This document shows positions 1-34,361 of a stretch of 34,976 bases of DNA, piece by piece. The DNA is from Macrostomum lignano. Taxonomy: Eukaryota. How positions within the stretch are numbered: position 1 is the first letter of the stretch; each line of letters begins with the position of its first letter. The stretch spans positions 1-34,976 of the forward strand of contig NIVC01004793.1 of the NCBI GenBank assembly GCA_002269645.1. Direction: 5' to 3'. Below the pieces are notes generated by a model. It did no database searches and was not told where the DNA came from. It worked only from the letters and a program-made list of their open reading frames with translations. A program made the translations under genes and the position numbers.

Positions 1-2
1 CG

Positions 3-700: not shown

Positions 701-1179
701 TCGCGGTATTGAGAGTCAGCAGGCAATCTGTGTGCGGCTGATCACTGGTTGCTGCAGCACGACGCGAATCTCCCCCCGATAGCTTCTGTCGCCGTGGAAC
801 GCGCCGCCAACCTCTTCGAGCGCATCGCCAGGCTCCCCTGAATGCCCGGCTCACGGCATTGCTATGCGCACGACCCGTGCCCGCCTCAAAAACCGGAGTT
901 TCGAAGAGGCCCCTGCGCCGACGACACCCGCCTCGAGCTCGACCGAGCAAGGCCCTTCCGAGGCTGCTGGCGCCGCGCCGCTTCGGAGCTCCCGGTCTGC
1001 GCCTCCACGCTAAGAGAATCTGACCGCGAGACCCCGCTCGCCTCGCTCCCTGGCTCGACTTCTGCCAGGCCCGCGTCAGCTTCGACATCCAGGCCTGCAG
1101 TGCCCGCAGGGACGCCCCGCCGAGGTCCGGGCAGCCGCCGCCTAGGCCGGCATCGCGCGAGCCCGCGAGTGCTCCGTCA

Positions 1180-1982: not shown

Positions 1983-2010
1983 TGGCGCGCTGGGAAAAAG
2001 AAAGAAATAA

Positions 2011-2890
2011 AGTACCTCCTGCACCGGCTGTGGGCAGTACGACTCGGCGCGGATGAGATGGCCTGCGAGCTGGAGTCGCCGACGGCGCAGTAGATCACTT
2101 GGACGTGGCAGGCCAGCGCGGCGATAGAGTGCCGCGTTGTTGACTCGCTCGACGCCGATGTTGAAGGCGGCGCGCAGCAGGCCAGCGTGCGCCGCATCGA
2201 CTTGCTGTTCGAGTGAGTCCGTCAACGTCCAGGTCTCGGCGTCGTAGAGCAGGACGGTCTCGATTACCGCCTGGAACAGCGCCGCCCTCTGGCGGTCCAA
2301 TAGGGCCTCGGACTGCAGGACAGAACGAAAGGCAGCCCAGGCAAGCCCGCGGCGGCGTCGCAGGTCCTTGCGAGCGTCTGGAACCAGACCGCCGAGGTAG
2401 ACGAACTGCTGACATCGCGGGAGCTCGGTCGTCTGCCCGTCAGCGCCTCGGCAGAATATTACAGCCTCGATGTCGTCCGGCACGCAGAGCACAACGGTCT
2501 TCTGCGTGTTGACCACCAGGCCGACGCTCGCCGCAACGGCAACTAGCCTGTCCAGCTGCCGTTGGGGGCCCTCGACGGTCGAGGACAGCAGGGCGAGGTC
2601 GTCGGCGTAGCCAAGCACGCTGAGCCGCTTCTCGGGTTGATGTCGACCCATGCGTCGCCGCAGCAGAAAGCCGTCGTCCTCGGTAGGAAGAGCAGTCCGC
2701 AGCACCCAGTCAAGCACCAGGACGAAAAGGAACGGCGCCAGCGTATCTTCCTGAAGCACTCCGGAGGATGTCTCAAAGGAGTCCGATGGGCCGTCCTGTG
2801 TTGTCACAGCAGCTGTCGTATCACGGTACATCGCCATGATGGCGGAGATCAGCTGCTCAGGCACGTTGTACGCGCGGAGCACCATTGGAT
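2011..2890 (-). mobile_element. RTE-like non-LTR retrotransposon fragment (RT domain), truncated at both ends
   Basis: ORF 1965-2906(-): GVLQEDTLAPFLF, LGYADDLALL, GLVVNTQKT, FVYLG, LLYDAETWTL, RRLQLAGH. Homology stops at QEVL (~2011), abutting the tail of the plus-strand LINE. Confidence 0.85.
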
Positions 2891-2914
2891 CCATACGCTG
2901 TTCCAACAGCTTAC

Positions 2915-2978
2915 GAGCTCAAATTTACGCTCGTAGCGAGAGGCGCTGGCTGTCGTCTGGGCAGTTAAATTTTGCACG
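2915..2978 (+). pseudogene. pol: Tiny Gypsy RNase H relic
   Basis: cgagaggcgctggctgtcgtctgggcagttaaattt translates to REALAVVWAVKF. Confidence 0.55.
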
Positions 2979-3534
2979 AGAAAGACAATAAACCATTGCA
3001 CTGTATTTTCCGGAAAGTCAGGAAAATGAAAGCAAAGGCGAACATTCGCATTTTATCTTTGATAATACGAACTTACGAAATTATAATTTTTAATTTCGTA
3101 TAATATAATTTCGTAATTGTAGTGACTCAGACAAAATCGGAGGGTTTGCGAGTGCACGAAGAATCTTAGAAATGGGCCGACTTGCCCTGCAAGTATATGT
3201 GAAGAGTAAGTGCGCGTGAGTCTTACGTAATACATTGCAACACGTGACTAATACTATTTGCGCGCCAATATTGTACATCGCACTGAACTACACTACATCT
3301 CTCCTCAAATACGGCATAAAAGCAAAATTTTAAAGTTGGGTTTAAAAAATCTGTTTTTGTTAAATTTCATTCTGTTACAATTTTAGCAAAAGTCCAGCAA
3401 AAAATACAAAAAATCAGATGCTCAGATATTCCATTTTTTAGTCTATGGCCAAGCCATTCCTGCAGCCAAGACTGGGCATGCTCTGGCCGTGGCTAGCCTG
3501 GCCTTGCTTGCGATCCTATGCAGTCTTGTTTTGA

Positions 3535-6125
3535 ATGTCTAAAGTCTTATCTAGAGCGTCAAAAGCGATAAGACCAATGAAGGGTGAAGCATTTTCGATC
3601 AAGCTTCCTAAAGACGCTCAACCTTTCTCCATTAAGACACCAAGGAGGATACCGTTCCCATTGTACGAGCGACTTAAAGCTGAGCTGGACTCGTTGGAAG
3701 CCCAGGAAATAATCTGCAAAGTCACTGCTTCTACGCAGAGGTGTGCACCGATAGTGGTGGCGCCAAAGAAAGACAATGGGATACGGATGTGCGTCGACTT
3801 TCGGGAATTAAACAAATATGTTATTCGACCAAGGTATCAGTCTAAGACGCCATTGGAAGTCGTTGCAAGCACAGATGCTAGTCGCGCCAAGTATTTCTCT
3901 GTAGTTGACGCCTTGAAGGGATACCACCAAATACCGCTGGCTAAAGAAAGTATGCACCTGACAACGTTCATCACGCCGTTTGGTCGTTATATGTTTAGGA
4001 TGGCACCATTCGGTATAAGCTCTATTTCTTAATATTACAACCAGAGACTTGACGAAACTTTTCAAGGACTCAAAGAAGTTTGGCATGTCGTTGATGACTG
4101 TCTGGTCGCAACTTCTGACGAGGAATCACGCGTACAAGCGGTTCGTCAGTTTCTGCAGCGCTGTCAAGACAATGGGGTAGCATTAAATAAAAAGTTTGCA
4201 TTTTGCAAGACTCAAATTGATTTTGCCGGATTTCGATTGTCAGCTGATGGCTACAGCATTGATCCGGAGCTTATGAAAGCGGTCAGAAAATTTCCCACTC
4301 CAAACAATATTACCGACCTACGCGCGTTCTTTGGCCTAGTCAACCAAGTCGGCACGTTTACGTCAGACATAGCAGAAGTCACAGCCTCGTTAAGGCCGCT
4401 GCTGTCCGAGAAGAATTTATTTCAATGGGGAGACGAACATCAAACGGCATTTGAAGAAGCCCGTCGCCGCCTGGCAATTGCTCCTACACTGGCCTATTAT
4501 GACCAACGCAAGCCAACAGCCCTGCACACGGATGCATCTCGACTTAAGGGAATCGGATTCTTGCTCAAACATCAGCAGACCGATGGAAGCTGGCGTGTGG
4601 TTCAAGCTGGCTCGAGATTCATTTCAGAGACCGAGTCACGCTATGCCATGATCGAGTTGGAACTGTTAGCTGTAATCTGGGCGACTCAGAAGTGCAGACT
4701 CTTCCTTGAGGGCCTTCATGAGTTTGAAATTGTAACCGACCACAAGCGGCTGATACCAATCCTGAACAGTTACCAGCTGGATCAAATAGAAAATCCCAGG
4801 ATTCAGCGTCTTTGAGCGAAACTGAACCGCTACGTATACAAGGCGCGATGGGTAAAAGGCAAGGACAATGCCGACGCAGACGCTCTGTCGCGAGCACCAG
4901 TGGACAATCCGACTGCACAGGATGAACTGGGCGAGTCTGCAGATTTTCAACTTACCAATCAGCTCTTAATGCACCTCGAATCAGCAGAGCTGGATCCTAT
5001 TCTGCAAAGCGTGCGACAAAGCACAGCTTCTGATCAGGAGTTGCAAGACCTGATGCAATATATTCGGGATGGCTTTCCCAATGACAAGGCAAACTTACCT
5101 CTTTGCATTCGGTCATTTTGGCATGTAAGAGACAAGCTCTCAGTCGACGACGGCATCATTCTATGCGGATGTCGTTGCGTCATACCACATGCAATGAGGA
5201 AGCAGATTTTGACGGACTTACACGCAAGTCACCAAGGTCTGTACAAGACAAAGCAGAGAGCAGGGATGGTCGTCTACTGGCCTGGCATCGATCGGGACAT
5301 TGAAAATACAGTCAAGAAGTGTCAGTCCTGTCGGGAACATCTACCATCGCAGATCAGGGAGCCGATGACAACCCAGGACCAACCGGATCGATGTTTTCAA
5401 CACATACATGCAGATTTTTGCGAGCATGCCGGCAAGAAGTTCCTTGTGCTCGTGGATGCATACTCAGGCTGGCCAGCGTTCTCTCATTTCGGTGATCGAG
5501 CACCCACATACAAGCTGATAAACGCTTGCCGCGAATTCTTTTGCCAAACAGCTGTACCGGAGAAATTTTGTGCAGACTGTGGGCCACAATTTAAAGCACA
5601 GCCGTTCGTTAATTTTCTACGTCGCTGGGGTGTGAACATCAAATACTCATCTCCGTATTACCATCAAAGCAATGGAAGAGCAGAAGCTGCCGTGAAAAGT
5701 ATAAAGAAGATCATTCGAGGAGCATGGGACAGTCGCTTGAATGACTTGGAGAAAGACAAGATGGCTCAGGGTTTGCTGCAGCTGCGAAGCACGCCCATGT
5801 ACGATGGCAGAATTCCATCTGTAATGGTCTATGGACACACAGTCAGAGACACGCTGCCCGCGCATAGGAAGGTTTTGCAAAGGAATGGAAGGACAAGGTC
5901 TGGAAAATGGAGGAAAAAGCTGCCGAAATTCACGCTAAAGTTCATCAACACTACAATGCCTCGAAGCGACAACTGGAACCTCTCCGAGTCGGCAGTCACG
6001 TTGTTCTTCAATACCCTGTCACAAAGCTTTGGAAAAAGAAGGGCGTCGTAGTAGAAGTTGGTCGGCACCAGGACTACATGGTCAAGTTAGTAAGCGGCCG
6101 AATTTTCCGTCGCAATCGCGTGTAA
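3535..6125 (+). pseudogene. pol: Gypsy pol (RT, RNase H, integrase)
   Basis: ORFs 3535, 4237 and 4900 share one frame, separated by TAA 4030-4032 and TGA 4813-4815. Motifs: VDALKGYHQI, HVVDD, TDASRLKG, ELELLA, TDHK, HASHQG..CQSC, HADF, SNGRAE. One frameshift near 5875. Confidence 0.9.
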
Positions 6126-6346
6126 ATCCGCCGATGTCTACCACAAGAACAGCTCTCTACTACTGGTGCATCTCAGAAGCAAGGTGAAGCACAAGACGCC
6201 CCGGACAAGCCAAAGACCGCACAGCCAAGGCGAAGTCAACGGTCGAACAAGAGAGTCCCGGCACCCAAGTTGCATTACAGGAAGTTGGGTGAACCAGTTA
6301 ACGCTTAAAAGGGGAGATGAGGAAGAAGGAACTATAAAACTGTTTT

Positions 6347-6361
6347 GCTTAAAAGGGGAGA
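6347..6361 (+). promoter_or_regulatory. Polypurine tract (second of two copies)
   Basis: GCTTAAAAGGGGAGA immediately before the LTR TG; identical 17-mer GCTTAAAAGGGGAGATG also at 6303-6319. Confidence 0.75.
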
Positions 6362-6506
6362 TGTTGTGTTCGTATGCGAATTATTCGTCTATGTGCGAAA
6401 CCATCTGCCCCCGTTTATATATGTCGACCCCAAACAAGCGACCAAATATATTAACTCATTTTCGGCCTAGCACCGATTACTGTGGCTTAATGCCAAGAAC
6501 ATAACA
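6362..6506 (+). repeat. LTR (145 bp)
   Basis: TGTTGTG...CATAACA (6/7 terminal inverted repeat), preceded by a PPT and followed by a PBS-like GGGTGACAGCGG. Confidence 0.7.
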
Positions 6507-6579
6507 GACGGGTGACAGCGGAGCCACAGACAACAACGACACCACGGGAAAGGCTGCAAGCGCTCCTGCCGCTCAGACC

Positions 6580-7415
6580 GCAGAGGCAAGCATCAGCCGC
6601 ATCGCAGTGCTCCCAGCGCCATTCTACCAAAAAGTGGTTTGTGCAACTGGGGCCAACTTTCTAAAGCATAGATAACAGATATTTAGCCACGGGAAGCAGC
6701 TAAAAGACGCGTGGGTTTTATAAACACACTGGTAGCAAACTAAGATGAAAAATCAATGGTCTATGGTCAGAAATGCCAGTCGTGAGACCCAAAATCGGTT
6801 TTAGCTGGTATAAAGCTATCAGATGGCTAGTTAGAGTATATATATTTACCAACTAACCGCTATCCAAGTCTGACATGGATTTTTTACACATACATGGGCT
6901 GCTAAAATCAGAACAAACCGATCGTAGCGTGTTTTTTTGGAAAGGAGGAACTTTCTTGTCAACGCGGATTTCAAAAAACGCTTTCGGGTAAATCCCGCTA
7001 CTGCTGAGGCGCTGCTGCAGCGAATTGAAGAACAACTGGCACCGGCAAGCAGGCGAAACTGTGAATTAGCTCGTATCCCCAAGAGAACAGCTTTCAATGA
7101 CACTTCGATATTACGCCACCAATGGCTTCTACCATCTGTTGAGAGATGCCCACATGGACCATCTAAAAAGCTGCTGCGTGTCAAGTCGTTCGAAAAGTCA
7201 CGAGGGTTGTGAATGAACGGAGCAGCTGACATAGATTAGTGTTTATAAAATTGGCCCCTGGAGTCACAGTTAGTTTTGGCCGGCATCATCTCTGCGAACA
7301 CTAAGTTCCACTACGCGCAATCCGCCTTGCGTTGGATGTCGTTTGCGACATAACCGACGTGGGTGACAACTACGATGCGTTAAAAACGGCGGTGACGGAT
7401 ATGCTGCGTTGGAAC
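6580..7415 (+). pseudogene. gag: Gypsy gag N-terminal relic interrupted by a Harbinger insertion
   Basis: Removing 6650-7257 and one CTG restores WFVQLESQLVLAGIISANTKFHYAQSAL, preceded by ISRIAVLPAPFYQ and followed by DVVCDITDVGDNYDALK. Confidence 0.8.
6650..7257 (+). mobile_element. PIF/Harbinger internal-deletion derivative (608 bp)
   Basis: TIRs GGGCCAACTTTCTAAA / GGGCCAATTTTATAAA (14/16), TSD CTG at 6647-6649 and 7258-7260. Internal DFKKRFRVNPATAEALLQRIEEQL resembles the Harbinger transposase N-terminus. Confidence 0.85.
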
Positions 7416-10883: not shown

Positions 10884-10894
10884 TGTTGTATATT

Positions 10895-11109
10895 TGTAGA
10901 CTAAGGCAGAGAGATACAACTGAGAGTTGACGAAGCCTCTTGGCGTTTATTAGATCGATACGCAGGTTAAATACGATACAACGATTGTTACATAACTGGG
11001 TATAAAAGATAGAGACAGGGGTGGGTGAAAAGCACGTACATGCTGTACAATAGCAACCCCCACCCGCTCTAGCGACTGGCGCATACAAGTACACTTGCAA
11101 CTCACTACA
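10895..11109 (-). repeat. 3' LTR
   Basis: TGTAG...CTACA termini; direct repeat of 16152-16367. Confidence 0.95.
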
Positions 11110-11264: not shown

Positions 11265-14200
11265 TCAACCGGCCACATAGCGATCCACCGGCATCCGCCT
11301 ACGCACCGGGTAGCGTCTCGGGGGCGGCTCCTCGTCCGCCTCATCGCCGCCGTGCGCCGCGTGCGCAAAGCGCGGCTGCAGGAAGCGCTCTCCGTCAGGG
11401 ACTGGCAGGATCCGCGGCCGCAGACGATTCACATTCACCCTGCGGGTCCGGCCGTTCTCGATCTTTTGGATTTCGACTACCAGATCCCGCTGCGACAGCA
11501 CCTACCACCCCGGCTCCCAGTAAGGCGCCAGCTTGGAGCCCCTCAGCTCGATGCGCAGCAGGACCTCGTCTCCAGGACTGAACATGCGCAGCTGCCCGGT
11601 CGACCTGTCGTAGCCGCTCTTTTGCTCGCCAGCCGCCTGCACCAGATGCTCCTCGACAAACTCTCGAATTCGCAGCAGGTCGCCTTCGAGCTTGTCGGCG
11701 TAGGTGCGCACGTCATAGAATCGCCTGGACTGCTGGCTGATGACCGGCAGGCTCGGATCGCGCCCGGTGAACACCTTCAGTGGCGGCAGCTGTGTTGAGC
11801 AGTGCACCCGGGAATTGTAGGACAGCAGGATCAGTGGCAGCTTGTCCTCCACTCGCTCTCTCGCTCGGTGAAACACCTGAGTAACTGCAGCACTGACTTG
11901 TTGCCCGACTCCGCTAATCCGTTGCCTTTGGGATTGTAAGCCGTTGTTCTTGTCTTCGTGACTCCCAGGCCTCGCAGAGTGTCTTGAAAAAGCTGAGACT
12001 CGAAATTCGGTCCTTGATCGGAGTGGATGACTCGGGGAAGTCCAGTCTGGGAGCAGATGGAGAGGAAGGCGCGAGCAGTAGTCTCAGCAGTCTGGTCAGG
12101 AATCGCCACGGCCGTCAGGTACTTGGAAAACTGATCCTGAGCCACCAGCAGGTATTTGTTGCCGCGCGATGATGGCGCCACCTTGACGATGTCGATAGCC
12201 ACAGAATCCCACGGCGAGCCGATTGGCAGTTCTCCGAGTGGCGCGCTGGTCCGCGAGCCCGCTTTCTTCTCCTGACAGACAGAACAACTCTGGCAGTGTT
12301 GCACGATGTCTTCAGCCATGCCGGGCCAGTAGGCGGTCAGTTTCAGTGTGCGGTAGCATTTCTCGGCTCCGAAATGACCTCCCAGACCTTCGTGAGCGTT
12401 GGTCAAAAACTGTTGTCGAAGCCGCGCTGGCACCACTGGAACCTCCCGCAGGCCGTCCGGGTCATTGAACTTGCGCAGTAGAACACCGTCATCATCCAGC
12501 TTCAGCTTCTTCCAGATTCTGCCGAGTTGCTGCAGTGGTCCTGCTCGCCATCTGGGTGCAATTTCTGCGTCCTTGTCCATCGCCTGAATCACCTGGCTGA
12601 GCTCCGGGTCATGTCGCTGCGCAGTTTTGAGCTCTTCAGTGTCGATTTCCGGAGTCAGCTGCGTAGCTGCGACTTCTTGGCCGTGCAGTCTGGACAGCGC
12701 GTCAGCATCTGAGTTCTCAACGCCTCTTCGGTACTTGACGGTGAAGTCGAACTCTTGAAGCAGCAGACGCCATCGTCCTAGCCTGCCGTAGCTGTCAACT
12801 CTCTGTGAATCGATGTAGGTGAGCGGGCAGTGATCCGTGTGCACCGTGAAATGCTTGCCGAGAAGATAGTGGCGAAAAACTTTGAATGCGTGCAGGATGG
12901 CCAGGCACTCCTTTTCTGTTGCAGAGTATTTCTTCTCAGCTGAATTGAATGCGCGGCTTGAGAACTCGATCACCGCCTCGCCTTGCTTGAGAATTGCACC
13001 GACTCCGCTGCCACTGGCATCCGTGAAGACTGAGAACTCCTTAGTTAAATCCGGGTTCACCAGGATCGGAGGACTAATTAGGCACCTTTTGAGCTCGTCG
13101 AAGGCCGTCTGGCATTCCGAAGTCCAGTCAAATGGAACGCCCTTGCCAGTCAGATGGTGCAGCGGTGCGGCGATGGCAGCGAAGTTGGCTACATGGCGTC
13201 GGTATTGGTTGCACAGGCCGATGAACTGACGCACCTCCTTGGCTGACCTCGGCTCTCTCCACTGCTGAATTGCCTCCAGCTTCTCCTGGCTGGGCTGGGC
13301 AACATCCTTTGAATACCGTGTGCCGAGAAAGGTCACTTCGGGTACCGCGATCTTGCACTTGGAGCCTTTTAATGTCAGTCCGGCTGCTCGAAGTCGCTCG
13401 AAGGTCTCTCGAAGTTGCCGCAGATGATCCGACTTGGTCTTTGAGAAGCACAGGCTGTCATCGAAGAACGTGAAGATGAAATCGCAGCCGTTGAAAACTT
13501 TTGACATTAGCATGCAGAATGTGCTTGGGCCCCCCGACAGACCTTGGGGCATTCTCTTAAATTGGTACAGCGGCATCCCTGGTCCCGGACAGAAAGCAGT
13601 TTTTAGCTTGTCTTCTTCTGCCATCGGAATTTGAAAATAGCCTCCATTGAGATCCAACACAGAGAACACTGAACTGCCTGCGATTCGATCTCTTGCCTCC
13701 TCCATCAACGGAATTCCCTGTGCAGAGCGAATAGTCTTCTTGTTGATCTCTCGACAGTCTATGGTCAGGCGGAGACTGCCATCCTTCTTTGTCACGTACA
13801 CCGGTGGGGCCACGTACGGACTTTCGCTCAGCTCTATCACGTCGTTCTCCAGCAGTTCCTGAATCAGCTGCTCTACCTTCTCCCGGTAATGCACAGGCAT
13901 TCGGCGCGGTGGCACTCGGACAGGTACTTCATCCGAGAGAACAATTCGGTGCTGTTGCAGATGAGTTAGTCCCGGCTTTTTCTTGAACAAGTCTTTGAAC
14001 TCCACCAGCAGCCGTTGTACATCAGGGTCGTCGGTAGTCGGCAACTCGAACTCTTCACAGCTGAACTCGGGGACGAGTGCGTCTTCGATGTCAACTGGAT
14101 CGTCGGTGTCAGCCTGGAATCTGGTGCTGCAGACTTGGCCGGCTTCTTGTGAAGATCCTGTGAAGTCCAGTTGCAAATTATGCTTGCCGATGAAGTCGAC

Positions 14201-14599
14201 TCCAACAATGACAGGGCAGACCAAACCTGACACAACGAAAAACAATTGCCGGGCTGTCACTCCACCGACTGTAAGTGGCGATTCAATTTGCCGTTCTATG
14301 CTAATTGGCTGCTTGTTCACTGAATGAAGTTGCACTCTGGCTGCAGTTGCCTGTCTGAGCTGGGATTTTGTCAGGATGCTGGACTCAACTAGTGAGCACT
14401 GGCTTCCGGTGTCTAACAGCGCCTTCACACTTCTGCCATCAAGCTTGCACTCACACTGCGATAGTCGGTCGGGCGCGACGCTGCATCCGTCGAAGATCCC
14501 GCCGACTGTGAGCGCCGGCCTTGAAGCCGCTGCTGCTGGGCCCGCAGTTACTGCTGGCCGGGGTTGCGGGCCCGCACACCCCAGCCTCTGGCGTTTCCC
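11265..14599 (-). pseudogene. pol: Gypsy pol (protease, RT, RNase H, integrase); one 1-nt deletion (~11850) and one TAG (11502-11504)
   Basis: 929-aa ORF: LLDTGSQ, LDLNGGYFQI, FFDD, TDASGSG, EKECLAI, TDHCPL, HEGLGGH..CSVC, SDQGPNFE, NGLAE; C-terminus continues in ORFs 11502-11876 and 11265-11501. Confidence 0.93.
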
Positions 14600-15357
14600 G
14601 GCTGTCGCCTGTTGTAGCAATCTCTGGCAATGTGGCCGGCCTTGTGGCAGTTGTAGCAGATGATGTCAGACTTCGAACAGTGCTGCGGTCTCGTTGTGCT
14701 ACTCGTCCTCACTCCACAGGCTGCCAGCTGCTGCAGCTGGGAACTCAGGGTGCTCACCGATGCCTGCAGACTCTGCACAGTGTCCCGCAGCTCCTGAACT
14801 TCGCTGGATTGGCTCGACTGAGGTTGCACCGCTGCTGCTGGGATGCTTGGCGAGCTGTGCTGCATCAGTAGCTGGGCCTTTTGAAGCGCTTGCTCTGAGG
14901 TCTTAACGCTGGAGTCCGCACGAATCTGCCAGCTCACGGATTCGGGAAGGCCACAGACGAACTGATGGAACAGCAGAGCCTCTTGAGCATATTTGTTGTC
15001 CACGGAGGAGCTTTTGAGCATCTTCTTTAACTCGTAAAGATACATGCGTGGAGTCTCATTCGACAAAATCTTCCTTGATTTGAACGCCTCCATGACGGCG
15101 AAGTGCTCGCGGTTCGGGTGGAATGCATCATCCAATGCCTGGACTACTTTGTCCTAGTCTGCCTGATCTCCTGCCGACAGTTCCAAATAAACGACGAGAG
15201 CCTCGCCATCCAAAAATGTGGCCAGTCGCTCCGCTTTGCACGTGTCCCACTTGTTGACTTTTGCGCATACATTGAAACGCTGCAGCCATTCCTTAAAGTT
15301 GCCGGTACTGAAAACTCTGGGCAGCGCTGCACTGGCGGTCAAACCTTTCTCAGCCAT
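14548..15357 (-). pseudogene. gag: Gypsy gag with CCHC knuckle; one in-frame TAG at 15154-15156
   Basis: ATG at 15357 (MAEKGLT..FKEWLQRF), QAD*DKVVQAL continuing in frame to CYNCHKAGHIARDC and a stop at 14548. Confidence 0.9.
14557..14599 (-). promoter_or_regulatory. -1 programmed ribosomal frameshift signal (G GGA AAC plus downstream hairpin)
   Basis: Heptamer GGGAAAC (14593-14599) in the gag frame, 7-nt spacer, then stem GCTGGGGT-g-TGCG/GGCC/CGCA-ACCCCGGC (14557-14585); pol is in the -1 frame. Confidence 0.8.
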
Positions 15358-15371
15358 TCTAGAATAATTTG

Positions 15372-15382
15372 CTCTGCTACCA
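15372..15382 (-). promoter_or_regulatory. Primer-binding site copy 2 (gag-proximal)
   Basis: TGGTAGCAGAG, complementary to the 3' end of animal initiator tRNA-Met; part of the 13-bp TSD. Confidence 0.85.
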
Positions 15383-15412
15383 GGTAATAGTAAGACAAAA
15401 CTCAATATTATT

Positions 15413-15450
15413 TGCGACGCGTTTCGGCTAAAACTAGCCATCTTCAGGCA
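15413..15450 (-). ncRNA. Type I minimal hammerhead ribozyme (left arm)
   Basis: Minus strand TGC-CTGAAGA-T-GGCTA-GTTT-TAGCC-GAAA-CGCGTC-GCA; predicted cleavage after GTC (between 15416 and 15415). Confidence 0.8.
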
Positions 15451-15597
15451 CTATCGAACAGAATTTATTTCAACCTATTAAATACTGTGTAGACGACAAA
15501 ATCAGGTATTGAAAAGATATAAAAGGACTAAAGGATCAATGTACAGTATAGCAATGTTCATAATATTTTTTTGTGGAATGACAGGACAGAGAAAAAA

Positions 15598-15600
<3 letters not shown>

Positions 15601-15648
<48 letters not shown>
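15601..15648. repeat. (AG)24 microsatellite; its mirror (CT)15 is at 15865-15894
   Basis: Read directly; accounts for nearly all of the length difference between the two arms. Confidence 0.95.
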
Positions 15649-15654
<6 letters not shown>

Positions 15655-15720
15655 GCGTATGCGCCCCAAATGTACTCTAGCTTAGAACACTAACATAGAC
15701 ATAGACATAGACAACAACAA

Positions 15721-15831
15721 AAATGAGCATAAACTTAACATTCTTGAAGCTCTGCAATTAAGTTACACAAACCCACTCTCAATGTCCAACTATCTGGAGG
15801 AGGTGCGAGTGAACAGCTGTTGGTGTTCTAA
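15721..15831 (+). pseudogene. C-terminus of a Penelope GIY-YIG endonuclease
   Basis: NEHKLNILEAL-(1-nt indel)-IKLHKPTLNVQLSGGGASEQLLVF*, matching the LEALxI..KPxLNxQ..LxLF end typical of PLE ORFs. Confidence 0.75.
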
Positions 15832-15858
15832 GCTAGAGTACATTTGGGGCGCATACGC

Positions 15859-15897
<39 letters not shown>

Positions 15898-16045
15898 TTT
15901 TTTTCTCTGTCCTGTCATTCCACAAAAAAATATTATGAACATTGCTATACTGTACATTGATCCTTTAGTCCTTTTATATCTTTTCAATACCTGATTTTGT
16001 CGTCTACACAGTATTTAATAGGTTGAAATAAATTCTGTTCGATAG

Positions 16046-16083
16046 TGCCTGAAGATGGCTAGTTTTAGCCGAAACGCGTCGCA
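16046..16083 (+). ncRNA. Type I minimal hammerhead ribozyme (right arm)
   Basis: CTGAAGA 16049-16055, stem II GGCTA/TAGCC, GAAA 16071-16074, palindromic ACGCGT stem III, GTC cleavage triplet ending at 16080, short stem I TGC/GCA. Confidence 0.8.
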
Positions 16084-16138
16084 AATAATATTGAGTTTTG
16101 TCTTACTATTATCTGTTAAGAGTGCTTCTCTACCGCAG

Positions 16139-16149
16139 CTCTGCTACCA
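16139..16149 (-). promoter_or_regulatory. Primer-binding site copy 1 (LTR-proximal)
   Basis: TGGTAGCAGAG 2 nt downstream of the 5' LTR end on the minus strand; iMet-tRNA complement. Confidence 0.9.
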
Positions 16150-16151
16150 GT

Positions 16152-16367
16152 TGTAGACTAAGGCAGAGAGATACAACTGAGAGTTGACGAAGCCTCTTGG
16201 CGTTTATTAGATCGATACGCATGTTAAATACGATACAACGATTGTTACATAACTGGGTATAAAAGATAGAGACAGGGGTGGGTGAAAAGCACGTACATGC
16301 TGTACAATAGCAACCCCCACCCCGCTCTAGCGACTGGCGCATACAAGTACACTTGCAACTCACTACA
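16152..16367 (-). repeat. 5' LTR
   Basis: Direct repeat of 10895-11109 with 2 differences. Confidence 0.95.
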
Positions 16368-16559
16368 TATTGACAGAGAACATACTTGGCGCAAAGACAC
16401 AGTAAGCCCCGAACCGATTGTTTTGTTGTCTAGGGCACAATCTATTATTTTATAATAAAGTAGTTACGACACGCATCCCAAGAGGAGTTAATCAAGCGGA
16501 GCAATACGATAGCTCGAACCGCTTAAGAGAACCATTGCCTTCCTTACTTAAATGTAGTA

Positions 16560-17018: not shown

Positions 17019-18370
17019 CTTCGGCTGTCAGGAAAGTCGTGAGAATGTGTCGATTAAGCAAGAAAGCAGCAAGCTGTTGACGTGGCACACAGAAATTTTC
17101 AATAATAGACTTATATATGTCTCTGGTGAAAATTCTTGTTATTCTAGTAGCAAAATTGGGGGCAGGGGCGAGCTCAGTATAAAGTGCTCAATAGCAAATG
17201 CAACGCGGTGATCAAGCTTGAAAATTTTGACAGCGAGTTCTTCAAAATGGAAGACTTCCAGGGTTATGCCTATGCTAGATACCGTCTTGGAATCTCCGCT
17301 CTCAGCTGCCATGACGAGCTGCTCAAAGTTTATGGAGATGCTGCACCAGGTCAGTCAACGGTTTACAGATGGTATTCGAAGTTCCGTGACGAAGCATTTC
17401 CCCCGGTCTCAGCTCCTCGGACTGGCCGGCCACGGTCAACAAGGACAGCGGAACTGATCGAAACCTGCCGAGCTCTTGTTGAAGAGGATCCAAAAGTTTG
17501 TGTCCGAGACCTCGCTGACTTTTTGGAAGTTGGAAAAACAACAGTGCACGAAGTTTTGACTGAGGATTTGCACCTTCGAAACGTTTCTGCTTTCTGGGTT
17601 CTGCATGCTCTATCCGAGGAGAAAAAGTCTGCTCGCATCAATTGTGCCAAGCAAATTCGCAGGCTTTTTTCAACGAGAGCATGGAAAACTTTTGCGACAA
17701 GTACGTAGTGGGGGATGAGACATGGGTGTACCTGAAAAACACTGGCACAAAGCAAAACAACAGGTGCTGGCTTGGCCAAGGGGATCATCGGCCCCAGGTT
17801 GTCAGGCACTCAGTCGGCAATGCAAAGACAATGCTTCTGGTTGCTTTTACTCCAAACAAGCGCTTCTCCATTGAATCCACAGCCCCAAAGCAGACTGTTG
17901 ATGCAAATGGCATAGTTGAGTTCATTCGGCACACCGGAGACCTATGGCGTACTCTCAGGTCAAGGCCAATTCATCTGTCGGATGTTCTTTGGCAGTGGGA
18001 CAATTGCGCGACCTCACGTGGCTCGTTCTGTGCAGCAGTACATGGAGTCCCGTGGAGTTCAGCTGGTGTTTCAGAGTCCTTACAGCCCAGACTTTAATTT
18101 GTGCGACCGTTTTTTGTTCAGTTGGATGAAGACTGATTTCTCCAGGCGAGTGTTCAGCGACCACAATCAAGTTCGAGAAGCTGCGTTGCAATGGGCAAGA
18201 GGCCTTGACGAAGATTGCTTGAAAAGAGAGGTTCAGCGACTCGTTGACCATTGCTAATCTGTAATCAACGCAAGGGGAGATTACATTACCAACTAGTACA
18301 GTTATCGTGTTTTCTGATAGTTCTGACTGGTTTTTTAAATACATTCTCACGACTTTCCGGACAGCCGGAG
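17019..18370 (+). mobile_element. Complete mariner (Tc1/mariner, DD34D) element, 1352 bp
   Basis: 30-bp TIRs 17019-17048 / 18341-18370 (2 mismatches), TA on both flanks, transposase motifs. Confidence 0.93.
17247..18296 (+). pseudogene. Mariner transposase with two frameshifts and one stop (18255-18257)
   Basis: TVYRWYSKF, PRTGRP, WVLHAL (WVPHEL-like), GDETWV, WDN-ARPH, YSPDFNLCD; 34 residues between the second and third Asp. Confidence 0.9.
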
Positions 18371-21020: not shown

Positions 21021-21893
21021 CGCCTTGGGAGGTACATCCGGTGGAGCGGCCCGATCAAAGTCAACCCCATCGGCGCCCTTCCCAAGTCCAATGGGCGGGT
21101 CCGCCTGATCCATGATCTGTCCTATCCGACCGGCCAGTCAGTCAACGACTTCTACGACCAACAGAAGCACATCAAGTACTGCACTGTCCAGCAGCTGGTT
21201 CGTCATCTCCGTCCGGGACACTACATGGCCAAAATTGATCTCAAAAGCGCTTACAGGTCCGTGCCAATCAGGCCTGCTGACTACCGGCTCGTCGGCCTCG
21301 CCTGGCGGTTTGACTCGGACAGCCAGGACAGTCTGCTCTGCGACACCAGGCTTCCATTCGGTGCAAAAGCTGCTTGCGAAGTTTTTCACCGTCTTTCAGC
21401 CACCGTTACCCGGCACATGCACCGGCTTGGCTTTTCTGCTACAATGAACCACTTGGATGACTGGGCAGTCGCTGGGAAATCCGAGTCCGAGGCTTTCGCT
21501 GCTTTCAATAGCCTGCTGGACATCTTGCAGCGCCTCGGCTTTACCATCAACTGAGACAAGGTTGTCAGGCCTACGCAATGCATCGACTTCCTTGGCGTGC
21601 GCATCAGCACCGCTACCAGCACCAAGTCGCTGCCCGAGGAGAAAGCTCTCGAGACGACTAAGCTGCTGACTCAAACCTGCTCGGAGACTCGGGTGCACAT
21701 GCGCTCTGCTCAGAAGCTGATTGGCAAGCTTGGCTGGTTCTGTCAGATTGTCCCTAATGTCAGAGTTTTCCTGCGTCCGCTCTTCGACTGGCTGACAACT
21801 GCTGTTGACTGCAAGCTTTGGGTGACCGATGAGACCCGCGCCAACCTGTCCTGGTGGCTCAGAGCCCTGGCTTGGCTCCACCCGGTGGCTTTG
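21021..21893 (+). pseudogene. DIRS/Ngaro-type reverse transcriptase (one in-frame TGA at 21552-21554)
   Basis: NPIGALPKSNGRVRLIHDLSYP, AKIDLKSAYRSVPI, RLPFG, NHLDDW, IDFLG, LIGKLGW, NLSWW. Confidence 0.88.
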
Positions 21894-22143
21894 TGTGAGT
21901 TATCGAGCTCTTAGCTATAACTGAATTTACTTTGTGGCTGTATGTCTATGGTTACAAACTCGTTCCGTTTGATACAGACCACGACATCGAGAAGCATAAA
22001 CTATGCTCGTAAGCGGTATAAAATAAAAGGTTCCAAAACACCTCGCTTATAGAGCGAGGGAACGTTATAGAAAGTAGCAAGCCAAGGGCTGCTCATAAAA
22101 GTTGTCTTTGAATTTGTTATCATTCTTCGGCCAAAACTTAACA
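21894..22143 (+). repeat. 5' LTR (250 bp)
   Basis: TGTGAG...TTAACA; repeat of 25841-26047 plus an extra 41 bp and an extra 2 bp. Confidence 0.9.
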
Positions 22144-22152
22144 CTGGCGACG

Positions 22153-23310
22153 ACGGCTGGTCAAATCGAGCCCTTGGAGACCGACTCTCCAGTGGACATC
22201 GGGCGATGGTTTTAAAGGTTCGAGGCGGTGGAGAAAATCAACAAATGGGAGGACGACACCATGAAGTTCGCCCTCATCGCACAGATGGGCAAGAAAGCCT
22301 TCGGCCTGCTGTCTGATGCGACTCTCCCGGGAAAGCCCGAGGACAAGAGCTACGACGAGTTAAAGGATCTTCTCGTCTTGGAAACTCTAGCAACAAAGTC
22401 CGAGATCGCACACCGATGCGCCTTCCATCACCTGAAGCAAGACAGCGGTGAGGACGCACCTGCGTACGCCAGACTACTGCGTCACATGGCGGAGAACTGC
22501 AACTTCTCAGACCAGAACGAGCGGCTGAGAGATCAGTTCGTGTTTGGCCTGGCGAACAAGAATATCGTCAGGAAGCTACTGATCGAAAAGGCGTCAGATC
22601 TCACCTTTGAGAGGGTAATCTCGCTCGCCAGCGCCTGTGAAGCGGTCAGCCGAGGAGAAAAACAAATCGCTGGAGGCGAAGTGCTATTCGTGAGTCAAGG
22701 GCACGCGGGTCATGGGAAACCTACGAAGACAACTCGACATGAAAACGGTTCTAAAAGCGGCAAAAAGGGCGGACGATGCGAGGTTAAATGCTTTTGCTGT
22801 GGACACTCAAAGCAAACCTGTCAGCATCGAACAAAGTCCTGCTTGAACTGTGGCAAGCCAGGACACCTCAAAGCAGTCTGCAGGTCCAAGGGGCCTGGAT
22901 GCGGAACGGACAAACAAGCAGGCGTTCGGCTGATAGACGACGCTGATGACCAAGATGATCGCATCTTTACACTTCAGTGCTGCAGACTCCCGCACTCTGG
23001 GCCTGAGGGTTCCAGGATCGTGAGGAGCCTAATAGTCAACGGATTAGAGGTCAAGATGATTCTGGACACTGGATCTTCTGCATCATACATGTCCAACAGT
23101 GCCTTTGAGCGACTCCCAGCCGAAGCGGAGCTGAAGCCAACGCCACGACGATTCGCCGCCTACCAAGGAGACCAAGTAAGCCTACGTGGGGAGGCAGAAG
23201 TAAGCGTCGAACACAACGGGCAACATGCAAGGCTACCGCTTTTCGTGGCGGACCGGCCAAATTCCGAATCAATCTACGGTCTCGACTGGTTGTCCGTACT
23301 ACGAGCGTAG
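22153..23310 (+). pseudogene. gag: gag-protease (single frame)
   Basis: GQIEPL..WF*RFE, LRHMAENCNF..LRDQFVFG, CLNCGKPGHLKAVC, ILDTGSS; no ATG (ACG at 22153) and a TAA near 22216. Confidence 0.85.
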
Positions 23311-23419
23311 AACCCGAACTCTACAATTGTCTCTGCCGAGTTAACGGTCCAGTAAGCAGCATAAATGATAACAGTGCCAATGGCAAGAACCCGTGTGCGT
23401 CTCTAGAGATCGAAAGCGG

Positions 23420-25819
23420 AACGCAACCGATTTTCGTGAAGCCCAGACAGATCCCTTTTGGCTTAGCAGACGACGTCAAGGTGGAGCTGCACCGCATGGA
23501 GCGGGAGGGCCAGTTGAAGAAAGTGGAATCGAGCGACTGGGCGACTCCTATAGTCTGCGTGCGCAAGCAATCCGGGAAAATCAGGATCTGCGGAGACTAC
23601 AAAGTGACCTTGAACCCCAGACTCAAGGACATGATTTCTTCAACGCCTTCGATTGACGAGGTACTGTCCCGGCTGGGCAAGGCTAAACGGTTTTCCACCC
23701 TAGATCTCACCAATGCCTATCTGCAGGTTCCAGTGGAGCAGCGTGATGCAGACCTGGAGCACCCCATTTGGCTTGTACAGGCCGACTGCTCTGGTATACG
23801 GTGTGAAACAGGCTCCTGCCATCTTCCAAACTTTCATGGACAAGCTTCTGCTTAACCTTGACGGAGTTATCTCGTACCAGGATGACATCCTAGTGTGGGG
23901 CGCCAATCAGGCTGACCATGATAAAAGACTGTCAAAAGTTCTTCAAGTTATTTAACAGAACGGTTTAAACATCAATAAGGACAAGCGCGTTTTCAATCAG
24001 CGGTCAATAGTCTTCCTTGGTTTTGAGATCAGCGACAACGGAATCAGACCTCCAAAGAAGAAAGTCGAGGCGATTGCTGGCTTGGGCGAACCGACGGATG
24101 CAAAACAACTGATGTCCTTCATCGGAATGGTGGAGTTCTACGCTCGATGCATCCCTAACCTAGCGAGCTTGAAGGAACCCTTGACCAACCTGACGAGAAC
24201 CGGCGTCAAATGGTCCTGGGGGAAGGGGAGAAAGAAGCATTCAACAATATCAAAGAGCGACTCCTTAACGCAGTGCACCTGAAGCCGTTTGACCCGACGG
24301 GAAACATCTGGCTCACGACTGATGCGTCACCTTCAGGATTTGGAGCCGTGTTGGAACAAGAAGCAGGACCAGTGATGTTCATTTCTAAAACACTGACATC
24401 AGCAGAGCGAAACTACGCACAGATTGAGAGGGAAGCACTCGCTATAGTATAGTCAGTTAAGCGGTTACACAAGTATCTCTTTGGCCGCAAGTTCATACTG
24501 CGCACCGATCACCACCCGTTAAAGTTCATATTTGATCCGAAGCGAGCACTTTCTACCGTCGCAGCAGCTCGAGTGCAACGGTGGGCGGTAGCACTGATGG
24601 GATACGACTACTCTATAGAGTGCAAACGATCTGAGGAGATACCAGTGGCGGATGCTCTATCTCGTCTCAAGACTAGCACCGCAGAGCAAGAGCAATTCGA
24701 CGTCAGCTCCGTACAAGAATGCATCGTAGCAATACCGATCAACAAGAACCGACTAAGGTGGCAATCCAAGGGTGATAGGGAAACAAGAAAGCTTTTCGGT
24801 TTAGTAAAGCACGGTTGGAAAACACCTGTATCGGAAAAACTTCAGCAGTACCACTCGTATCGGAACGAGCTGGTGATTGAAGATCGACTACTCTACCGAG
24901 GAATTCGCCTGTTGGTACCGAGTCAAGAGCGACAAGCGGTTCTACGGCTGCTTCATGACGGTCACATCGGGCCTGACAAGATGAAGTCGATAGCCAGGCA
25001 GTGTGTCTGGTGGCTGAAAATTGATCGCGACATCGTCGAGTTCTATAAGCGATGCTCTTCGTGCCAACAAAACAAAGACCACGGCATTACTCGACACTGG
25101 ACTTCTTGGCCAGACGAGACTGAAAGGTGGGCACGAGTCCATGTTGACTACGCCGGACCTCTACCCAGAGGCAACTACCTTCTAGTGATGCTAGACGCCT
25201 ACAGCAAGTGGGCCGAGGTTCATGTCACCAGGAGTACTTCGAGCACAGAAACAATCAAGCGACTACGGCGGACATTCGCCCAGGAGGGAGTACCAGCGAC
25301 TATCGTGTCAGACAATGGACCTCAGTTCATTTCTGCGGAGATGGAGGGCTGGCTGAAAGGAATTCAGTGCCACCACGTGCTCGCCCCTCCATACCACCCG
25401 AGATCAAATGGACTGGCTGAGATATTTGTGCGCGATTTGAAAAACCATGTAAGAGCTTCTAGTGAGACTGATCTTCAAACGTGCATTGACCAATATCTCT
25501 TGCAGTACAGAAATGCGAAGCACGCAACTACGGGAAAATCTCCTGCGAGACAGCAAAATGGAGAGAGGGAGAGATCATTTCCCGCAAAGACAACGTGGTT
25601 GTCGACGTGGAGTTTAGCGATGGACGACAATGCCGACGCCACCTGAAGCAGGTGAAGCCAAGGGTGACGGAGGACCCAACACCGGCAGCAGATGTTTCAG
25701 CTCCGATTGACGAAGACCCGGAGCCCCAAGACATTGAAGCACCAAGGGTTCGACGGAGTCAGCGAGCTAGACGAACACCTGACAGACTGCAATACCGATT
25801 TCTAGGTGTACCTACGTAA
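23420..25819 (+). pseudogene. pol: Gypsy pol (RT, RH, INT) with many frameshifts
   Basis: WATPIV..IRICGDYK, LDLTNAY, YQDD (23875-23886), TDASPSG, EREALAI, TDHHP, LHDGHIG..CSSC, HVDYAGP, SDNGPQF, SNGLAE. Confidence 0.88.
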
Positions 25820-25840
25820 ACTCTATCTACCGTGGAGGAG

Positions 25841-26047
25841 TTTGAGCTATCGAGCTCTTAGCTATAACTGAATTTACTTTGTGGCTGTATGTCTATGGTT
25901 ACAAACTCGTTCCGTTTGATAGACCACGACATCGAGAAGCATAAGCTATGCTCGTGAGCGAGCGAACGTTATAGAAAGTAGCAAGCCAAGGGCTGCTCAT
26001 AAAAGTTGTCTTTGAATTTGTTATCATTCTTCGGCCAAAACTTAACA
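25841..26047 (+). repeat. 3' LTR (207 bp)
   Basis: Matches the 5' LTR with about 4 substitutions and two deletions (41 bp and 2 bp). Confidence 0.9.
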
Positions 26048-26052
26048 CTTTG

Positions 26053-27615: not shown

Positions 27616-27996
27616 TGGGATCCGCTTTCTCGGCCGCTGCCTGCTTTTCGCAACTGATTTGTCTCGTTTGGCTCCTTCCGGCGTGTTTAATGCAATCGTT
27701 ACTCTCTGCGTAAGGTGTGTTAAACGCGCCGGAGGGTGCCGCTGTACATATCGCTGTACTTTGGCGGGGGGTCGAGGTGTGGGGGTGTTGGCCGCGCCGG
27801 CCAGCTTAAAGCCTCTACACCCGGCCGGGCTTGGCTCCGCCGCAATTTCTCAATTTTTTTATTCTGCTTTTTACGAACCAATAAATATTAACTCGTTAAA
27901 ACTAATAAACAAACGCTTCGCTTGATCCGCTGGGATCCGCTTTCTCGGCCGCTGCCAGCTTTTCGCAACTGATTTGTCTCGTTTGGCTCCTTCCGG
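27616..27996 (+). repeat. Split direct repeat: B1 27616-27681, A2 27682-27930, B2 27931-27996
   Basis: Two 66-bp copies TGGGATCCGC...CCTTCCGG with one mismatch; AATAAA motifs in the intervening block. Confidence 0.85.
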
Positions 27997-28125: not shown

Positions 28126-29935
28126 TCAGATCACGGTTCCTCGAGGCCTCAATCGCGTTTCAGTTAGTGGCACGTCCTCATGCTGATAGCGTCGTCGACG
28201 CACTAACGGCTTGACGATCTTGGTAGCTTGATCCGGTTGTGGAACAGGTTGACATTTTTCCAACTGTGTTGCCTTTTCTCCGGGTTGAGGCTGGCCGATT
28301 AAATGTTCCAGTACCTCGTCCGTAATCATCTGGGGTTGCTCTGCAGCACTAGCAGGCAGTATGTGGTCCACATGTCGCTTCCAGACCATGGGGCCCACCT
28401 TCACTAGATATGATAGCGGGGCTCGGCGTCGAAGGATTGTTCCCACAGCCCATTTGTCCTCCGCTTGTCTTCTAAAGTCCAACGTTAGCACGTTGTCGCC
28501 TTGCTTGAACTCTCTGATCTTCGGACTGGCTCTTGCATCATGCTGCATTTTCTGTTGATGCTGCTTCTCGGCGACTCGCTGATCCGTGTCTGGATTAAGT
28601 ATGCTGAGTTTGGTTCGTATTGAGTATTTGAGCATCATTTCAGCAGTTGACTTCCCGGTAGTAGAATGGGGCGTCATGCGGTATCGTGCCAAGAAGGCAT
28701 TAATACTTTCTATAGCATCATGGCTGCTCTTCATCTCAGCCCTCAAGGCTCGCTTTGCTGTTTGCACCATCCGTTCGGCTTGCCCATTTGAGCGTGGATG
28801 CCCAATTGATGTTAGAACTTGTACAATTCCGCGACTCCTTAAGTAGTCCTTGAACTCCTTTGCAGTAAATTGGGATCCGTTGTCTGTAAGGATCTGCTTC
28901 GGATATCTGTAGCGAGCGAACGTCTCTTGGAGTCTATTGATGGTGTTATAAGTGGTCGCCGATCTCATTGGGAAGATTTCCACCCATTTTGTTGTGGCGT
29001 CCACGAGCAACACCCAAGTATATCCGTAGCATGGGCCGAAAAAGTCCAAGTGCAGTCGAGTCCATGGCTTCTCTGGCCAATTGAGAGGCTGTAGCGGTGC
29101 TTGTGCAGGCAGGTTTCGTTGCGATTGACATCCTGTGCATCTAGCCAAGCAATTTTCTGTATCATTATCAATGCCTGGGTTACCATATGTGCATTCTTGC
29201 CAGCGACTTTTCGTGCCCATAATTCCGGGGTGTTCTTCATGCAGCAGCTGCAGAAGCTGACTTCTTAATACTGATGCAATTATTCTCCGAATTCCCCAGA
29301 ATAGAACTCCATCTTCCACGCTCAGTTCATGCCGCCGGCTATGAAATGGCCTTAACTCTGCCTCCATTTATTCTGGCCAACCAGCTCTGCAGTAGTGAAG
29401 AACTCGCGACAGCAAGGGGTCATTCGAAGTGGCTCTTTTTAAGTCATTGGAGTCGATCGGTTGCGCGTCTATCCTATTCTGGAACACGGCATCATCTGCT
29501 CCTTGAAATTCGGAAGTGGGCAGTCTGGATAAGGCATCCGCATTCCTGTGGTCTTCCGTTCGTCGGTACCGAATTTCAAAGCTGTAGGCTGAAAGAATTA
29601 CTGCCCATCTTTGTAAACGGCTGGCGGCAATGCTAGGTATGTTGTTCTTAGGCCCAAAAATCGTGACCAGAGGCTCATGATCAGTTACCAGGATAAACGG
29701 GCGCCCATAGAGATATTGATGAAATTTCTTTACCGCGAACACGATGGCTAAACCTTCCTTCTCAATCTGAGAGTAGTTCCGGTCCGCTTTGGACAAACTT
29801 CGAGATGCATAGCATATAGGCTTCTCTTCCGAGTCTTTAAGCGTGTGTGACAGAACAGCACCTACTCCATAGCATGATGCGTCGGTCTGTACTACGAGTG
29901 GCTTGCTGGGGTCATAATGCGTTAGGACCTTGATG
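28126..29935 (-). pseudogene. pol: Gypsy pol fragment (RNase H and integrase), nearly intact
   Basis: THYDPSKPLVVQTDAS, EKEGLAI, TDHEPL, ADALSR; GWPE*; LHEEHPG..CTGC, HLDFFGP, TDNGSQF, SNGQAE; single stop at 29368-29370. Confidence 0.9.
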
Positions 29936-30142
29936 TGGATGGACTCTTATTAGTACATCCATGTCTATGGCCCTGACCTCCACCGCCTACGTGCTAAGAG
30001 GCAGGGCGATTAAATATATTGTTTTAAGCTCCTTGGCTCGCCACCAGAGCAGCCCAAGTTACATTATACCAAAGCATATAACATGGCATCGCAAGCAGGC
30101 ACTGAAACCGTGTGCTAAAGCTTCTGGCAAAAAAACCACAAA

Positions 30143-34050: not shown

Positions 34051-34071
34051 CCACTGACCGCCGACAACTGG

Positions 34072-34329: not shown

Positions 34330-34330
34330 T

Positions 34331-34343: not shown

Positions 34344-34361
34344 TCTTCAGAAGAAGACAAA

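Follow-up and report, generated by a model that had tools for sequence, protein, structure and literature searches.

A putative Penelope-like element fragment nested at the primer-binding site of a Gypsy retrotransposon in Macrostomum lignano

The stretch of Macrostomum lignano DNA analysed here (34,976 bp, referred to as the window) carries a Ty3/Gypsy retrotransposon on the minus strand, the leader of which is interrupted by a 754-bp insert. The insert is bounded on both sides by copies of a 13-bp sequence containing the primer-binding site (PBS) of the Gypsy. The features of the host element and the two bounding repeats are as follows.

10895-11109, minus strand: 3' LTR, with the PPT GGGGAGGA just inside it and the host target-site duplication (TSD) TATT at 10891-10894
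11831-15357, minus strand: coding region, with gag from 15357 to 14551 and the pol ORF from 14665 to 11831 (945 codons)
15371-15383, minus strand: gag-proximal copy of the 13-bp TSD with its PBS, CTGGTAGCAGAGC, 13 nt upstream of the start codon of gag (15357)
16138-16150, minus strand: LTR-proximal copy of the 13-bp TSD with its PBS, with a single A between it and the 5' LTR
16152-16367, minus strand: 5' LTR (216 bp, TGTAG...CTACA), with the host TSD TATT at 16368-16371

The host element has the LTR termini (TG..CA), PBS, PPT, PR-RT-RNaseH-IN domain order and short TSD (4-6 bp) of Ty3/Gypsy retrotransposons. Its two LTRs are separated by one substitution and one indel in 216 bp. This copy is defective: gag is interrupted by a premature TAG at 15156-15154, a position at which Tyr is encoded in the paralogue, and the end of pol is frameshifted. 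The pol product is 99% identical to Macrostomum lignano BOX15_Mlig009944g1, which is encoded at the locus of a second copy of the same Gypsy (contig NIVC01002320.1, locus L001). The M. lignano DNA examined comprised the window and 22 kb of L001.

The window contains the 13-mer GCTCTGCTACCAG at exactly two places, 15371-15383 and 16138-16150, which enclose 754 bp (15384-16137). Its expected number of chance occurrences in the window is 0.06, and two matches were obtained in none of the 100 shuffled sequences. The exact repeat on either side of the insert had been pointed out in a sequence-only reading of this DNA, and these are its only two occurrences in the window. On the minus strand the 13-mer reads CTGGTAGCAGAGC, and both copies include the 11-mer TGGTAGCAGAG, which within the window is confined to them. 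We take TGGTAGCAGAG, the complement of the 3'-terminal 11 nt of the eukaryotic initiator tRNA-Met, to be the PBS; no tRNA gene permitting a direct check was present in the window or in L001. The 13-mer is then composed of the 11-nt PBS and one non-tRNA-complementary base on each side. The whole initiator-tRNA PBS thus lies inside the repeat, and the host Gypsy now has two PBS copies, one next to the LTR and one 13 nt before gag, both of which the sequence-only reading had stated correctly.

The second, independent Gypsy copy at L001 is ~99% identical to the one in the window and has different flanks. It contains the 13-mer once, in an empty site reading LTR-A-CTGGTAGCAGAGC-AAATTATTCTAGA-ATG. 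The junction is ...TCTACAA-CTGGTAGCAGAGC-AAATTATTCTAGAATG or, in a longer form, ...GTCTACAA-CTGGTAGCAGAGC-AAATTATTCTAGAATGGCTGAG. This is exactly the sequence that had been predicted to result from removal of the insert, which restores the LTR-PBS-gag leader. Since the 13-mer is single in the empty site, its repetition in the window represents a genuine duplication generated by the insertion, and by this comparison of sequences the 13-bp repeat is a true TSD. In a chimeric UniRef gene model (P0010), the peptide STTGSRANYSRMAEKG runs uninterrupted across the LTR end, the PBS and gag, which indicates a further Gypsy copy lacking the insert. The insert is therefore absent from at least two other copies of its host (L001 and P0010). 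No other PBS was found to be occupied in the window or in L001.

Within the insert, the following features were distinguished; the Penelope-like element (PLE) sense of each arm is given as its strand.

15384, no strand assigned: extra G at the left junction, unmatched in the other arm, where an A would be expected
15385-15696, minus strand: left arm, tail-less, ending 57 nt into the PLE ORF
15416-15447, minus strand: hammerhead motif of the left arm, with C3 at 15447 and predicted cleavage after 15416
15697-15813, no strand assigned: unique central segment of 117 nt with no detectable protein homology, around which the 5' ends of the arms meet
15814-16111, plus strand: right arm, identical to the left arm save for the lengths of the (CT)/(T) runs
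16049-16080, plus strand: hammerhead motif of the right arm, CUGAAGA-U-GGCUA(GUUU)UAGCC-GAAA-CGCG-UC, with predicted cleavage after the C at 16080
16112-16137, plus strand: tail of 26 nt, TCTGTTAAGAGTGCTTCTCTACCGCA, present at the right end only and without a left counterpart

The insert is best read as two 5'-truncated PLE 3' ends arranged head to head, with their 3' ends pointing outward; each includes the terminal part of the pseudo-LTR (pLTR), a hammerhead and the initial ORF codons. No substitutions separate the arms over ~290 nt, and they differ only in the microsatellite run ((GA)25 at 15600-15649 in the left arm versus (CT)15 at 15865-15894 in the right arm) and in the adjacent T-run. 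The lack of substitutions between the arms, compared to the two differences between the host LTRs, fits a single recent event. The central segment presumably belongs to one of the two copies, which would reach further in the 5' direction, and the G at 15384 may be either an untemplated base or a polymorphism of the template. The GC content of the insert is 37.5%, in comparison to ~56% for the host interior. No other units of the insert were found in the window, and the two present are inverted rather than tandem.

Each arm carries a hammerhead motif overlapping the start of the PLE ORF. The descriptor used to search for it required the core boxes, no more than one bulged base (0-1), at least 4 bp in helix II, A15.1...U16.1, H17 and a 3-bp helix I. 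Composed after the sequence had been seen, this descriptor matched only two sites when applied to both strands of the 35-kb window, one in each arm, and had no match in 300 dinucleotide-preserving shuffles. A relaxed version yielded no additional sites in the window or L001. With the same parameters, the descriptor recovered the hammerhead of Poseidon_Ac, which served as a positive control and showed a C3-to-ATG offset of 6 nt. In both arms, the 3-bp helix I brackets the core on both sides. In the right arm, A9, the bulged U and G10.1 make up the ATG at 16055, located 6 nt after C3; the corresponding start codon of the left arm lies at 15441-15439. The ORF start, which thus falls within the ribozyme, extends over 19 codons in the arm, lengthened to 27 codons by the tail. 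The traits tabulated as specific for PLE hammerheads, which in their minimal form escape standard descriptors (PMC4209133), are all present, namely a nucleotide that separates position 9 from 10.1, a G10.1-C11.1 pair and a helix III that is palindromic. The bulge after A9, the palindromic helix III and the ATG placed 6 nt after C3 are common to the insert and to Poseidon_Ac, the consensus of which (CUGAGG-AUG-CC...GGGC-GAAACGUC) represents an experimentally validated ribozyme (PMC11167929, File S1). The Rfam hammerhead models gave no match at the gathering score or at E<=10, either in the window or in small slices of it (including one of 131 nt); the Rfam matches obtained were restricted to microRNA-model artefacts produced by the (GA)n/(CT)n hairpin. 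The monomeric hammerhead fold had a z-score near 0 and was not thermodynamically favoured. Both results would be expected for minimal, dimer-type PLE hammerheads.

The insert shows no capacity to encode a PLE protein. Neither the window, including the insert, nor L001 yielded any sequence coding for an RT or a GIY-YIG domain in a tblastn search with the Poseidon_Ac protein, and the ORFs of the insert had no match in Pfam. The absence of an RT/GIY-YIG ORF implies that the insert is only a truncated or non-autonomous derivative and not an autonomous PLE. The 60-aa ORF of the central segment had no match among 1.84 billion representatives. This segment was also considered as the C-terminus of a PLE endonuclease; the BLASTP alignment to Poseidon_Ac was colinear but had an E value of 6.7, Pfam and the representatives gave nothing, and the assignment was rejected. 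In a collection of 5.8 billion proteins, none was found that starts with the predicted N-terminus of the PLE (MASFSRNASQIILSFVLLLSVKSASLP, used in doubled form to attain a length of 40 aa), and the hammerhead core had no exact match in the DNA of the metagenome and GTDB collections. Exact-protein look-ups of the window ORFs retrieved no record. When a 4,650-aa concatenate of the transposable-element ORFs of the window was used as a query, the matches were very long Cordylochernes polyproteins only. The start codon of the left arm is in frame into gag, by chance, giving MASFSRNASQIILSFVLLL-PGSRANYSR-MAEKG...

The architecture of the insert corresponds to that of PLEs in several respects. Arkhipova and colleagues have described PLE copies that are 5'-truncated and adjoin an inverted copy placed head to head, an optional tail of ~30 bp at one end only, and TSDs of 8-10 bp checked against empty sites (PMC3846280, PMC8557442). 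The pLTR of A. vaga Pen2a covers the initial 12 amino acids of the ORF, or 22 with the tail (PMC3846280, PMC8557442). In Schistosoma, also a flatworm, pairs of hammerheads that lie on opposite strands at distances of 100-700 bp have been read as truncated PLEs (PMC4209133). Like the EN+ Penelope/Poseidon PLEs, i.e., Poseidon_Ac of Anolis, Pen2a_Av of Adineta vaga and Perere-10/Cercyon of flatworms, the insert has inverted pLTRs formed by a 5'-truncated copy adjoining head to head, PLE hammerhead traits and a one-sided tail. The position of the ATG inside the ribozyme equals that of Poseidon_Ac, and the first ORF codons lie within the pLTR. The TSD is short and variable in length (13 bp here, as checked against the empty site at L001, versus 8-10 bp in A. 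vaga PLEs). Unlike the EN+ PLEs, the insert lacks an RT/GIY-YIG ORF and consists of just ~300-440 nt of the 3' end, present twice; its tail, although likewise found at one end only, is slightly shorter than published (26 nt versus 30-40), and a (GA)n microsatellite lies within the repeat. These data support well the derivation of the insert from a Penelope/Poseidon-type PLE as a truncated non-coding fragment, with membership of this family assigned on architecture. The PLE origin put forward in the sequence-only reading is supported by the hammerhead and its PLE traits, the Poseidon_Ac-like ORF start, the head-to-head inverted pair and the one-sided tail.

The possibility that the insert is not a PLE but a foldback or MITE DNA transposon, or an assembly palindrome containing a hammerhead-like sequence by chance, is improbable in our opinion. 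Such an origin would account for the long near-perfect inverted repeats, the internal microsatellite and the lack of coding capacity, as well as for the failure of Rfam to see a ribozyme and of the protein search to find a PLE protein nearby (window and L001). However, the 26-nt tail at one end makes the termini asymmetric, so that the inverted repeats stop 26 nt before the right end, whereas a foldback element or MITE would have terminal inverted repeats reaching both ends and a TSD fixed for its superfamily. We know of no cut-and-paste superfamily with a 13-bp TSD. The combined layout of hammerhead and start codon also occurs in Poseidon_Ac and was not reproduced in any of the 300 shuffles. 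An assembly palindrome, in turn, would also have inverted host sequence and would not have left a clean TSD matching the empty site.

There is also a resemblance to the metazoan non-LTR retrozymes, which have been proposed to be non-autonomous derivatives of PLEs; the insert is likewise short, AT-rich and non-coding, with a type I hammerhead and a TSD exceeding 4 bp. In retrozymes, hammerhead units of 170-400 nt are repeated in tandem, head to tail, and yield circular RNAs, whereas the insert is a single inverted pair. The ribozymes of the insert are located on opposite strands, so one transcript contains just one of them in sense. As in the case of retrozymes, the insert was probably mobilised by PLE machinery.

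We propose the following course of insertion. A PLE GIY-YIG endonuclease would have nicked both strands 13 bp apart, the minus strand at GAGC^AAATTATT and the plus strand at CCAG^TTGT, leaving 3' overhangs. Each 3'-OH would then have primed reverse transcription at one of two adjacent internal starts of the PLE RNA. The minus-strand 3'-OH (...GGTAGCAGAGC-3', nick before AAATTATT) would have primed at the distal start, 83 nt into the ORF, giving rise to the right arm and its 26-nt tail; the plus-strand 3'-OH (...GCTACCAG-3') would have primed at the proximal start, 57 nt into the ORF, giving rise to the tail-less left arm. The two incomplete cDNAs would have been joined centrally, and fill-in would have produced the 13-bp TSD. 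The AT-rich nick site beside the PBS and a partial complementarity between the overhang and the tail RNA may have helped. Frangieh et al. (PMC11167929) showed that both strands of the DNA are nicked and extended by the Poseidon_Ac protein, and that it favours AT-rich sites. Its reverse transcription begins at two adjacent internal starts, both within the initial ~110-120 nt of the ORF; the stretch between them constitutes the tail (PMC11167929).

The inverted, TSD-flanked structure of the insert is also reminiscent of L1 twin priming, in which microhomology can guide the second priming. In that process, which Ostertag and Kazazian reportedly described in 2001, both 3' overhangs of a staggered break prime, resulting in an inverted structure with a TSD. 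In L1 twin priming, however, the second primer anneals at an arbitrary internal position of the RNA, so just one end is the 3' end of the element. Both outer ends of the insert instead correspond to the same specific internal start region, as would be expected from the defined initiation sites of a PLE RNP. Taken as a whole, the account of a PLE fragment inserted by two-strand nicking and double priming, with the PBS hit by chance, is in our judgement quite probable.

The location of the insertion within the PBS is most likely a coincidence. Targeting of the PBS by a PLE subfamily, another possibility raised in the sequence-only reading, is not supported by these data; it appears unlikely a priori, and the single insertion event available does not prove it. 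We consider it improbable, about as much as a non-PLE origin of the insert, that this PLE lineage prefers the initiator tRNA-Met PBS or sequences resembling tRNA 3' ends. On such a reading the nicked plus strand, whose overhang ...CTCTGCTACCAG-3' resembles the 3' end of tRNA-iMet, might for example anneal to a degenerate PBS-like region of the tail RNA and prime there. A 13-bp TSD containing the whole PBS is possible at just 3 of the ~4,700 positions of the element. The left-junction 13-mer matches the reverse complement of the tail at 16113-16125 in 9 of 13 positions, including the 3'-terminal CAG, a score attained by only 0.1% of the window 13-mers (p ~0.001, post hoc), or by 0.05% when the terminal 3 nt are required to match. 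The last 12 nt of the tail additionally resemble the TSD in direct orientation (p ~0.02; joint p ~0.005, both post hoc). PLE lineages with biased insertion do exist, as exemplified by the microsatellite-biased Naiad, Chlamys and Neptune, which provide a precedent for sequence bias. Against targeting, only one insertion is at hand, and the PBS coincidence, like the microhomology, was spotted post hoc; the PBS is unoccupied in two other copies of the host Gypsy (L001 and P0010). The microhomology also conflicts with the report that PLE priming requires no homology. The published preferences of PLEs are for AT-rich sites or microsatellites, and one of the nicks here abuts AAATTATT; no PLE has been reported to target the PBS of LTR elements. 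The similarity between target and tail amounts to a weak hint and is regarded as a lead.

Slightly less probable still is a specific form of such targeting, in which the tail region would itself be a degenerate PBS, and a nick beside an initiator tRNA-Met PBS would expose a DNA 3' end identical to that of tRNA-iMet (...CTCTGCTACCA), which would anneal to the tail over 9 of 13 positions and prime reverse transcription of the PLE. If this were true, the PBS of iMet-primed LTR retrotransposons would be preferred landing sites, and one retroelement would be parasitising the priming site of another class.

The least likely explanation, which we judge very improbable, is that the cassette was gained during reverse transcription of the Gypsy itself, through a template switch at the PBS within the virus-like particle that captured PLE RNA or cDNA: the PBS is the site of the second strand transfer, two PBS copies bound the insert and the tail is somewhat similar to the PBS region, but both 13-mers are genomic sequence. 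They have a C on the 5' side of TGG and another C at the position for which tRNA-iMet, if copied, would specify G, and therefore neither was made by copying the tRNA primer. Moreover, outward PLE 3' ends, one tailed and one tail-less, are characteristic of target-primed insertion by a PLE, the arms (0 differences) look younger than or of the same age as the LTRs (2 differences), and the cassette is missing from the other Gypsy copies (L001 and P0010). Joining during reverse transcription, one of the origins suggested in the sequence-only reading, is consequently disfavoured by the non-tRNA bases of the 13-mer, the presence of both PLE start sites, as is typical when insertion is mediated by an endonuclease, and the Gypsy copies lacking the insert.

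Chance insertion into the PBS by PLE machinery, the reading preferred here, makes this a real but ordinary nested insertion, and the mechanism agrees with the known behaviour of PLEs. The predicted folding energy of the insert is -559 kcal/mol, compared to -188 for shuffled sequences. A read-through transcript initiated in the 5' LTR would carry a perfect hairpin of ~300 bp between the two PBS copies in its leader. Such a hairpin would be expected to impair severely the translation or reverse transcription of this Gypsy copy, which is defective in any case, and could feed small-RNA pathways.

The empty site, the 13-bp TSD, both outward 3' ends and both reverse transcription start sites are available here for one event, which resolves the anatomy of a PLE insertion in a flatworm. 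This anatomy agrees with recent in vitro work, in which PLEs cut both strands and prime on both. The insert also documents an un-annotated family of PLE hammerheads in M. lignano, known here from one insert. If a preference for PBS or tRNA-like sequences held genome-wide, it would constitute a new kind of target specificity among PLEs and would bear on the question of whether PLE reverse transcription starts without homology to the target.

The host Ty3/Gypsy copy (minus strand), which carries the 754-bp Penelope-like element (PLE) fragment, was found to be defective, with or without the insert, because of a premature TAG codon in gag (15154-15156) and a frameshift at the end of pol relative to the sequence P0001. 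The position of the premature stop is occupied by tyrosine both in the insert-free Gypsy copy of the Macrostomum lignano locus NIVC01002320.1 (L001) and in the insert-free UniRef gene model A0A1I8IVY6 (P0010). The start codon of the left-arm PLE 3' end lies in frame with gag through the target-site duplication and the leader, generating a 95-codon ORF (15154-15441, minus strand) with the predicted peptide MASFSRNASQIILSFVLLL-PGSRANYSR-MAEKG... The in-frame fusion of the PLE start codon with gag is probably fortuitous. At the junction, the only adjacent base breaking the symmetry of the two inverted arms was the G at 15384, where A was predicted from the T at 16112. This G may represent an untemplated addition or a difference in the template.

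P0010, a gene model carrying a protein-tyrosine phosphatase annotation, is chimeric: an N-terminal part with fibronectin and phosphatase-like sequence is joined to the primer-binding site (PBS), gag and pol of the host Gypsy family. The splice point corresponds to the TTAG of the LTR, leading into the PBS. In the L001 locus, the region upstream of the Gypsy copy (1-6807) consists of a complex of large direct and inverted repeats, including an inverted match between 1-2436 and 6460-4027 (99.7%) and further repeat units at approximately 91%; neither PLE coding sequence nor a hammerhead was detected within this complex. The L001 Gypsy copy departs from the window copy approximately 90 bp short of the 3' LTR (approximately 12300 in L001, equivalent to 11200 in the window), and no 3' LTR was found for it in the 22 kb of L001 that was covered. 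This copy is truncated or interrupted at approximately 12300.

The following additional features were identified in the window:

1379-2056, plus strand, weak RNase_H match within the GC-rich stretch 1-3000
1968-2918, minus strand, weak RVT_1 match within the same stretch
3535-6051, 28126-29946 (minus strand) and 33093-34925, additional Gypsy fragments (RT, RNase H, IN, gag)
17151-17705, ORF with a Mos1/mariner-type HTH

Two further pairs of direct repeats were recorded, namely 27616-27681 and 27931-27996 (98% identity over 66 nt, 315 bp apart), and 34135-34247 and 34864-34976 (100% identity over 113 nt, 729 bp apart), the latter reaching the window end.

Both strands of the stretch 1-3000, which has a GC content of 62-70%, contain long ORFs. 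This stretch is possibly a LINE-like element whose composition is very unlike that of the remaining window. ORFs encoding PR and IN domains (22216-25643) are located between direct repeats (21893-22145 and 25840-26049; 98-99% identity, approximately 3.9 kb apart), an arrangement suggestive of a second Gypsy element, a short one, of which the repeats would be the LTRs. The window is a transposable-element nest.
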